A DNA stretch of 63,702 nucleotides, the filler included, from Reticulomyxa filosa (taxonomy: Eukaryota; Protista; Foraminifera): assembly GCA_000512085.1 (NCBI GenBank). It is 19 parts of 19 records of this genome, joined end to end, with 100 filler letters (N's around TTAATTAATTAA, not from the genome) between each part and the next. Parts side by side here need not be neighbours in the genome. Positions count along the whole stretch, not along the records: positions 28,408 to 29,816 come from ASPP01012774.1; 18 more parts are not named here. One strand, written 5' to 3'. Position numbers and translations under genes: made by a program. The notes below the pieces were generated by a model. That model was not told the origin of the DNA. It ran no database searches and saw only the letters and a program-made list of their open reading frames with translations. Positions 28,408-29,816 of the stretch are shown here, piece by piece; position 1 is the first letter of the stretch, and every line of letters begins with the position of its first letter.

Positions 28408-28548
28408 CCCATTCTGGAAAGCAACCGCCACCTGCGCGACGTGCTGACGGCGGCCGGGGCGCAGGTGCAGTACGCCGAGTTTGCCGCCGGCCATGATCGC
28501 CTGCACTGGCTGGCCACGCTGCCGTACGGGGTACTGGCTTTGCAGTAG
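28408..28548 (+). CDS. Bacterial enterochelin-esterase-like alpha/beta hydrolase, C-terminal fragment
   Basis: PILESNRHLRDVLTAAGAQVQYAEFAAGHDRLHWLATLPYGVLALQ* matches the Fes-like C-terminus, including the catalytic-His motif (xGHD...W). Not in the ORF track because it has no start codon. Confidence 0.75.
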   Translation, partial: PILESNRHLRDVLTAAGAQVQYAEFAAGHDRLHWLATLPYGVLALQ

Positions 28549-28648
28549 ACGTTTTTGTCCGATTACGGTCACCTGCTTGTGCCCGGTGCCAGCTGCAGTA
28601 GCATGCTGCTGCCGGGCGCGCTGCCTTTCAGGCCATTTTCCAGGCAAA

Positions 28649-28667
28649 ATTAGACTAAATGTCTAAT
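28649..28667. promoter_or_regulatory. Perfect palindrome, candidate operator 1
   Basis: ATTAGAC-TAAAT-GTCTAAT (7-bp arms, GAC-N5-GTC core). Confidence 0.55.
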
Positions 28668-28711
28668 AATTGGCTTTGGACAGCTTTTTGCAACACAGTA
28701 TTGGCCTATTT

Positions 28712-28752
28712 TGACGGCAATGTTTGACAGATTGTCGTCAGATTTGTATCGT
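28712..28752 (+). promoter_or_regulatory. sigma70 promoter of leuA, with an inverted repeat (candidate operator 2) around the -35 box
   Basis: TTGACA (28724-28729), 17-bp spacer, TATCGT (28747-28752). Arms TGACGGCAAT (28712-28721) and ATTGTCGTCA (28731-28740) are 9/10 complementary. A nested GAC-N5-GTC lies at 28726-28736. Confidence 0.7.
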
Positions 28753-28780
28753 GAACCCATAACAAGACAGGAGCAGCAGC

Positions 28781-29816
28781 ATGCAATTGGACATCGAACG
28801 TCTAATCGAGGATTTTGGTGGCCCCGGTACGCTCGCGGAAGCGTTGACGGTGGCCTTTCCCGATGAGCCGGTGTCCCGTGCTGCCATCTACAAATGGCGC
28901 GAGCGCGGCACTTTGCCGCTGGCACAGCTGAACAAGCTGGCCAAACTCGCCGCCGATCAGGGCAAGCGTTTCGATTTCAACGACTATCTGGCCGGGGCAC
29001 AACCCGCGGCACAATGGAGATCACCAGACATGGGCGACCGTCTTTACATTTTCGATACCACCCTGCGTGACGGCGAGCAATCGCCGGGCGCGGCCATGAC
29101 CAAAGAAGAAAAAGTACGTATCGCCCGCCAGCTGGAGCGCCTGGGTGTAGACGTGATCGAGGCCGGTTTTGCTGCCGCCAGCCCGGGCGACGCCGACGCC
29201 ATCCGCGCCATCGCCGAGGTGATCAAGGATTCCACTGTCTGTAGCCTGGCGCGTGCCAACGAGCGCGACATTCGCGCCGCCGGCGAAGCCATCGCCCCGG
29301 CCCCGAAAAAACGCATTCACACCTTCATCGCCACCAGCCCGATCCACATGGAGAAAAAGCTGCGCATGACGCCGGATGAAGTGGTGGAAGCCGCTGTGAA
29401 GGCCGTCAAACTGGCGCGCGAATACACCGACGACGTGGAATTCTCTGCCGAAGACGCGCTGCGCTCCGATATCGATTTCCTGGCCCGCATTTTCGGTGAA
29501 GTGATCAAGGCTGGCGCCAGCACGCTGAACGTGCCGGATACCGTCGGCTACGCCGTCCCGCGCGTCACCGAAGCCTTCTTCCGCGAGCTGATCGCCAAGA
29601 CGCCGGGCGGCGACAAGGTGATCTGGTCTGCCCACTGCCATAACGACCTGGGCATGGCGGTGGCCAACAGCCTGGCCGCCGTACTGGGCGGTGCCCGTCA
29701 GGTAGAGTGCACCATCAACGGCCTGGGCGAACGCGCCGGCAACGCCGCGATGGAAGAAATCGTGATGGCGGTGAAAACCCGCAAGGACGTGTTCGGCGTG
29801 GAAACCGGCGTCGATG
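28781..29816 (+). CDS. leuA: 2-isopropylmalate synthase with an N-terminal Cro-like HTH extension (bacterial, 3' truncated by the contig end)
   Basis: [21 protein letters not shown] and GLGERAGNA motifs. The first ~70 aa ([18 protein letters not shown]...[16 protein letters not shown]) are Cro/YdaS-like. SD AGGAG at 28769-28773; second SD GGAGA at 29016-29020 before an in-frame ATG at 29030. GC-rich, intronless. Confidence 0.95.

Follow-up and report, generated by a model that had tools for sequence, protein, structure and literature searches.

A Cro-like helix-turn-helix domain encoded in frame with 2-isopropylmalate synthase (LeuA) in Neisseriales, with candidate operators at its own promoter

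The window analysed here is a stretch of DNA of 63,702 nucleotides, and the piece under study spans positions 28408-29816. This piece harbours the 3′ end of an upstream gene with its stop at 28548, followed by an intergenic region of 232 nt and one long ORF (Table 1). Vogesella fluminis and V. aquatica show 98% protein-level identity to the piece. From aa 88 on, the ORF product is a normal LeuA catalytic domain, for which LeuA equivalogs were the top NCBIfam matches (aa 88-345), and the motifs DTTLRDGEQ and HCHND are present in the translation. The full-length LeuA equivalog of NCBIfam scored 479 bits, below its cutoff of 729 bits, because the piece ends at aa 345. Orthologues with 98-99% identity are 596 aa long and possess PF00682, PF22617 and the LeuA allosteric domain PF08502. 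The upstream gene, of which 28408-28548 are present on the same strand, is not pssA, unlike in Chitinibacteraceae, and the flanks 5′ of the site O1 differ between the window, V. fluminis and V. aquatica. A GC-rich imperfect inverted repeat at 28581-28617, 3′ of the upstream gene, has 13-nt arms with 77% complementarity and no T-run, and may be a weak terminator.

Table 1. Positions of the features of the HTH-leuA locus, counted along the window
Feature	Position	Strand	Remarks
O1, perfect 17-bp palindrome TTRGAC-N5-GTCYAA (candidate operator)	28650..28666	.	131 nt before the ATG
O2, TTGGAC half-site	28676..28681	+	at -105
O3, operator-like site	28723..28739	.	left half is the -35 box; right half GTC in the spacer
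Sigma-70-type promoter TTGACA-17-TATCGT (predicted)	28724..28752	+	10/12 consensus positions; sole such site in the piece
Shine-Dalgarno AGGAG of the long (HTH-LeuA) form	28769..28773	+	7 nt 5′ of ATG 28781; GGAG near-invariant across genera
HTH-leuA ORF	28781..29816	+	ATG 28781 to piece edge; 345 aa readable; full-length orthologues 594-610 aa
Possible O4, two perfect half-sites 7 nt apart	28787..28805	.	inside codons 3-9; TTGGAC then GTCTAA
carph-isopro (Cro-like HTH) domain	28793..28975	+	aa 5-65; NF046037 match; Cro/XRE fold (model); pN/pS about 0.34
Linker	28976..29029	+	aa 66-83; variable length and sequence
Internal Shine-Dalgarno GGAG and ATG (Met84), canonical LeuA start	29016..29032	+	ATG at 29030
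LeuA catalytic (HMGL-like) domain	29042..29815	+	aa 88-345; Pfam PF00682 at 4e-95

For the 83-aa N-terminal extension of this ORF, the initial annotation had proposed a Cro/YdaS-like helix-turn-helix (HTH) pattern, to be checked by structure prediction, and both the profile search and the predicted structure bore this out. NCBIfam NF046037 ('carph-isopro') matched aa 5-65 with 70.2 bits (cutoff 38), covering the whole 54-position profile. The window domain is thus a clear member of the family whose label the initial annotation had named for some Neisseriales, and the fusion is already catalogued; the entry is a domain label only, and no function, operator or publication was found attached to it. 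The Pfam view of the extension was weak, with P22_Cro at E 0.008 (16.3 bits against a gathering threshold of 30.2) and YdaS at E 0.02 (15.1 bits against 30). Kinship to P22_Cro and YdaS is drawn only from the fold and from the protein-language-model neighbours, which were small viral proteins and YdaS/P22_Cro clusters.

The AlphaFold2 model of aa 1-70, built from an alignment of 20 sequences, has five helices (pLDDT 88.5). The best eight Foldseek matches in the PDB were all-alpha Cro proteins, including Xfaso 1 and N15, with probabilities of 0.77-0.97 and with E-values that were non-significant, as is usual for so small a domain. Xfaso 1 Cro fitted the model with a TM-score of 0.61 and an rmsd of 1.5-1.6 Å over 55-56 alignment columns. 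Independently of Foldseek, VIA-align returned Cro/XRE HTH domains for nearly all of its top 50 matches, at Z 4.4-6.3, values that are modest for a helical domain this small. Conservation within the domain is highest at the presumed recognition helix and the motif just after it. According to the model, the extension is a Cro/XRE-type HTH fold.

The five-helix fold and the position of the recognition helix are common to the extension, the all-alpha phage Cro proteins (Xfaso 1, 3BD1; N15, 2HIN/6ON0; P22, 1RZS) and the YdaS/P22_Cro families. Further likenesses to phage Cro are the proposed 17-bp palindromic operators and the free-standing relatives in cro position, both described below. The extension differs from phage Cro in being sub-threshold in Pfam (16 bits against 30), fused to an enzyme and without predicted self-dimerisation; the homodimer prediction for the isolated HTH domain scored 0.01, on which the tool gives no verdict, neither for nor against.

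When 1.84 billion representatives were searched exhaustively by profile, only 208 matched at E up to 0.001. Apart from LeuA fragments, the matches were free-standing proteins of 64-110 aa, and all 40 of those tested match NF046037, as does the window domain. Free-standing relatives with context lie opposite a CI-like HTH_3 repressor, by an integrase or among phage early genes, which is the cro position. Sixteen further copies of the domain were present in IMG/VR viral contigs, and tblastn of the domain against GenBank phages gave no match. As the free-standing relatives occupy the prophage cro position, the fusion looks like a captured phage Cro. The longer profile matches were LeuA fragments or unrelated multi-HTH proteins, with no CarA or CarB among them, and none of the relatives examined showed the 'carph' (carbamoyl-phosphate synthase) context.

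Among the best fold matches were also the HTH-like domains of the enzymes MPnS (6b9s, Z 6.3) and HEPD (6b9r, Z 5.4), which are not known to bind DNA. Since these match equally well, the fold by itself is no proof of DNA binding, and the extension could have a structural or protein-contact role, as is said of the XRE-like domains of HEPD and MPnS. Such a role would suit the construct of N. meningitidis LeuA in PDB 3RMJ, which starts at the canonical LeuA start, so that a folded enzyme exists without the HTH. We regard it as quite improbable, given that the closest sequence relatives are prophage proteins in cro position, that conservation is highest at the presumed recognition helix and that a variable linker, flexible by prediction, joins it to the enzyme. 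Palindromes co-inherited with the domain (see below) would also be left unexplained.

The extension is stop-free and in frame with LeuA in 12 genera of Neisseriales, through a linker that varies in length and sequence; with the indels in the linker, the internal Met lies at residue 81-90 across these genera. In the full-length AlphaFold2 model the pLDDT falls below 50 over residues 73-91. This model was poor overall (mean pLDDT 60.7), and we rejected the domain packing that it gives, noting the low-confidence linker alone. A scored search with only the extension returned 111 clusters of proteins some 595 aa long, all with LeuA domains and all annotated as 2-isopropylmalate synthase, and none of the more than 100 clusters has a stop between the HTH and the LeuA parts. 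Sequences from Neisseria, including one with the label N. gonorrhoeae, have the same in-frame arrangement. The entry 3RMJ, which has an orthologous catalytic domain, aligns to aa 86-345 only (E 1e-136) and lacks the HTH domain, although Neisseria genes encode it in frame. Short matches from a word-based search that seemed free-standing were rejected as fragments or frameshifted pieces of the fusion, and the candidate free-standing protein P0150 was also rejected, as it sits in a frameshift-ridden contig.

In the HTH region, non-synonymous differences amounted to 0.09-0.33 per site and synonymous differences were saturated (0.5-0.9), with a median pN/pS of 0.34. This low ratio at saturated synonymous sites indicates that the region evolves as a translated, constrained domain. 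Metatranscriptome contigs from four runs in two studies cover the locus from 28771 onward, one of them unbroken over 28771-29160, and no RNA-library contig of the same set was found on 28455-28736. This pattern fits a transcript start just 3′ of the predicted promoter, although contigs cannot prove a start, and it argues against plain DNA carry-over. The in-frame fusion described in the initial annotation is kept in 12 genera and 111 clusters, under purifying selection and with continuous RNA contigs. As predicted from the gene and these contigs, an enzyme and a DNA-binding-type domain are encoded as one polypeptide. Summed contig depth in freshwater metatranscriptomes peaks over 28831-28924, in the HTH-coding part, and such depth cannot rank gene parts.

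The linker also contains a second possible start (Table 1). In 13 out of 15 genera, GGAG stands 6-10 nt 5′ of the internal ATG; it occurs in each of the three codon phases and encodes different residues, which suggests that it is conserved as DNA or RNA; the chance occurrence of such a GGAG was estimated at about 9% of comparable stretches. Met84 is conserved to at least 90%. The simplest explanation would be that the internal GGAG is the ancestral ribosome-binding site of leuA and continues to be used. One mRNA would then probably give two predicted products, HTH-LeuA and plain LeuA, and because the internal ribosome-binding site and ATG are conserved, the fusion is likely one of two isoforms.

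These internal signals, together with the canonical start of 3RMJ and the classical annotation of N. meningitidis LeuA at 517 aa, would also suit initiation essentially only at the internal ATG, with an upstream ORF that is little used or cis-acting, for example in translational coupling. We consider this very improbable. The upstream ATG has its own conserved AGGAG, the amino-acid sequence of the HTH is under purifying selection at saturated synonymous sites, and the two parts are never separated by a stop in the clusters examined.

The initial annotation had placed a near-consensus sigma70 promoter 28 nt before the ATG, leaving no room for a Leu-rich leader or attenuator, and neither statement needed revision. 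A consensus scan of the piece found one site, against 0.4 in shuffles, and its -35 box is conserved across all genera aligned. The -10 box lies 28 nt from ATG 28781, and the 5′ UTR, reckoned from the promoter position, has about 21 nt. The 5′ region gave no Rfam match at E up to 1, and its folding was no better than that of shuffles (z -0.25). Together with the short distance to the ATG, this indicates that there is no attenuator. Feedback on leucine synthesis at the leuA promoter region would be the aim in common with the enteric leu leader; unlike the latter, leuA here has neither a leader peptide nor a terminator between the promoter and the gene.

Other repeats were noted around the promoter. 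A 10-nt inverted repeat around the -35 box (28712-28740) was taken for chance, since it is not conserved even within Vogesella (V. fluminis). In the loci of a MAG and of Chitinivorax (L105:1455-1500 and L106:1455-1500), the 5′ UTR carries a perfect inverted repeat, CTATCCTG...CAGGATAG. Its 3′ arm includes the ribosome-binding site that serves the long form, and the repeat may control translation of the HTH isoform in a lineage-specific manner. Two other loci (L104:1405-1435 and L107:1395-1430) have a GC-rich hairpin followed by a T-run between O1 and O3, probably the pssA terminator. O1 lies 5′ of this terminator, at the pssA stop codon, and could therefore also act on ilv-pssA read-through.

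Candidate operators over the gene's own promoter had also been proposed. Palindromes were found and are conserved, which upholds the proposal in part; in the window, the site overlapping the promoter, O3, is the weakest copy with 8/12 positions, and the best is O1, 131 nt upstream. O3 scores 9-11/12 in most other genera. Within the window alone the palindromes have no significance, as 27 of 100 shuffles reached as many matches at up to 3 mismatches, and their significance comes from conservation across genera. An alignment of 13 upstream sequences has two conserved islands, O1 and O3, in otherwise unalignable DNA, and the GTC of O3 in the promoter spacer is invariant in it. Every HTH-bearing locus examined has these sites, O1 between -112 and -140 and O3, in 16 out of 17 loci, at -56 to -62. 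Both sites were defined on 12 loci and then found in four loci fetched later (Chitinimonas BJYL2, a MAG, Chitinivorax and Formivibrio), with O1 at 11-12/12 and O3 at -57 to -59. Exact matches to the palindrome numbered five in 107 loci, all of them O1. The density of half-sites is 22.6 per kb between -160 and +40 and 0.68 per kb in the remainder of the same loci.

Further half-sites accompany O1 and O3. One is present in the window at 28710-28715, and an O2-type half-site at -102 to -106 was found in Vogesella, Aquitalea, Crenobacter, Chromobacterium and Craterilacuibacter. In the possible O4, a CTA codon at a Leu position (28800-28805) completes a perfect GTCTAA 7 nt after TTGGAC, and the codons CGT CTA form this right half in 8 of 19 loci; CTA is expected to be a rare Leu codon in GC-rich genomes. 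The evidence for O4, which the half-site scan counted too, is weak, because its left half is fixed by conserved Leu-Asp codons. Neisseria-like loci and Formivibrio have a TTGGAC half-site 6-17 nt 5′ of the ATG, where it overlaps or adjoins the ribosome-binding site used for the long form (L086:5985-6000, L087:1206-1215, L012:5645-5652 and L107:1495-1500).

The distance between O1 and O3 is 71-75 bp in 11 out of 16 loci, Aquitalea being excluded because the scan mis-placed its O3. The exceptions, at 53, 61, 61, 65 and 83 bp, correspond to 5.0, 5.8, 5.8, 6.2 and 7.9 helical turns. In these few independent cases, the geometry suggests binding on the same face of the DNA, possibly with looping. 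The half-sites are spaced by 5 nt in O1 and most O3 copies, by 8 in the Aquitalea O3 and by 7 in the possible O4; we speculate that variable spacing would suit two separately tethered HTH domains better than a rigid Cro dimer.

If a cluster is defined as at least three half-sites within 100 nt, 16 of the 18 loci with an HTH have one at the leuA promoter. In 68 HTH-less loci no cluster was found before leuA, and two clusters occur elsewhere in those 746 kb. Among the leuA genes examined, the palindromes, at the level of clusters, thus occur only before those with the HTH, the pattern for which the initial annotation had suggested looking. The single other cluster in the HTH-bearing loci, in L087, was rejected as an inverted-duplication assembly artefact repeating the same leuA region; in this assembly chimera the leuA start region (L087:1-560 and L087:1000-1544) is duplicated in inverted orientation and joined to a peptidase M13 gene. 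In most Chitinibacteraceae, pssA is the gene upstream and O1 is located at its stop codon. Between Vogesella species, similarity begins exactly at O1 and the upstream gene differs from pssA, which indicates that the operator module travels with leuA.

Within Chitinimonas, strain BJYL2 possesses the HTH, O1 and O3, and C. taiwanensis has neither the HTH nor the motif. By sequence similarity the upstream gene is the same in both, and the two are sisters in the LeuA tree (support 100/96). On this tree the HTH state must have changed at least twice, and with each change the operators went the same way as the HTH. Such co-loss is supportive only, since the HTH and the operators are adjacent and one deletion could take both.

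Before the free-standing relatives of the domain, at 16 viral loci and at prophage loci, the leuA-type operator was absent, and these have their own, different palindromes; one leuA-type match 119 nt before P0153 in L084 is given little weight. Repeated palindromes, such as CCTACA-N3-TGTAGG and TGTCGG-N5-CCGACA, lie between the CI-like and the cro-like genes (L109:4815-5005, L110:4790-5005 and L081:1595-1848), which fits putative operator arrays of different specificity.

As the main alternative, the palindromes before leuA could be the sites of a separate regulator, for example a leucine-responsive protein of the Lrp/AsnC family, with the HTH doing something else. By eye, the half-site fits the E. 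coli Lrp consensus (YAGHAWATTWTDCTR-type) at four of five positions when R is A, and because of this resemblance another regulator could own the sites. The motif ends are YAG...CTR-like and the centre is AT-rich, as in that consensus, and Lrp typically has several phased sites in front of a gene for branched-chain amino acids. Nevertheless, we judge an Lrp-type owner unlikely. The sites occur only with the HTH, including in the Chitinimonas sister pair, and a second cluster is missing from the 176 kb of Neisseriales sequence surrounding leuA, even though L106 extends to the end of ilvC. Furthermore, the invariant C/G third from the centre clashes with the Lrp consensus, and roughly every second site carries a G where an A is favoured by Lrp.

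We lean slightly towards a gene for a bifunctional protein, LeuA and autorepressor in one, whose long form would bind O3 and O1. An N-terminal domain derived from a phage Cro-type repressor would be tethered to the dimeric enzyme by a flexible linker of about 18 aa, and the two HTH domains of one dimer would bind the 17-bp TTRGAC-N5-GTCYAA palindromes. Bound at O3, on the -35 box and spacer, the protein would keep RNA polymerase out, and O1, about 73 bp upstream and mostly near whole helical turns away, would assist, perhaps through a loop. The 5′ UTR would be very short and without attenuator, and the internal ribosome-binding site would probably also give plain LeuA. DNA binding and repression by HTH-LeuA are what we infer from comparing sequences, and leucine may plausibly exert control through the allosteric domain that the orthologues have at their C-terminus. 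A fuller account is more doubtful, if still possible: a phage Cro would have been domesticated as the N-terminus of LeuA in an ancestor of the Neisseriales, with two isoforms, and the promoter would be closed by long-form dimers on O3 and O1, the leucine-bound allosteric state setting their affinity for DNA; this feedback device, complete in itself, would have replaced attenuation, also in N. gonorrhoeae and N. meningitidis.

Similar to the trigger enzymes PutA, BirA and NadR, HTH-LeuA combines an enzyme and a DNA-binding-type domain in one chain, has candidate operators at its own promoter and also possesses a ligand-binding allosteric domain. It differs from them in the enzyme and in the fold, which is Cro-like and not ribbon-helix-helix or winged helix, and bears no sequence relation to them; a second, HTH-less isoform is likely, and the proposed role as a regulator comes from sequence comparison. 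Already known are the domain label (NCBIfam), the long proteins (RefSeq) and, as a general kind, enzymes with fused DNA-binding domains. Searches of the literature returned nothing on the HTH-LeuA fusion or its function, in line with the earlier statement that no functional characterisation was known. Apparently new are the operator module and how strictly it is linked to the HTH, the origin of the domain in prophages, and the internal start.

For leuA, a candidate operator sequence, a predicted promoter and two putative start sites are now defined. If the proposed role is true, an amino-acid biosynthetic enzyme would join the few enzymes that double as transcription factors. A phage repressor would have been recruited into core metabolism and kept across the whole order Neisseriales, and the LeuA of pathogenic Neisseria would have been studied so far minus part of its protein.
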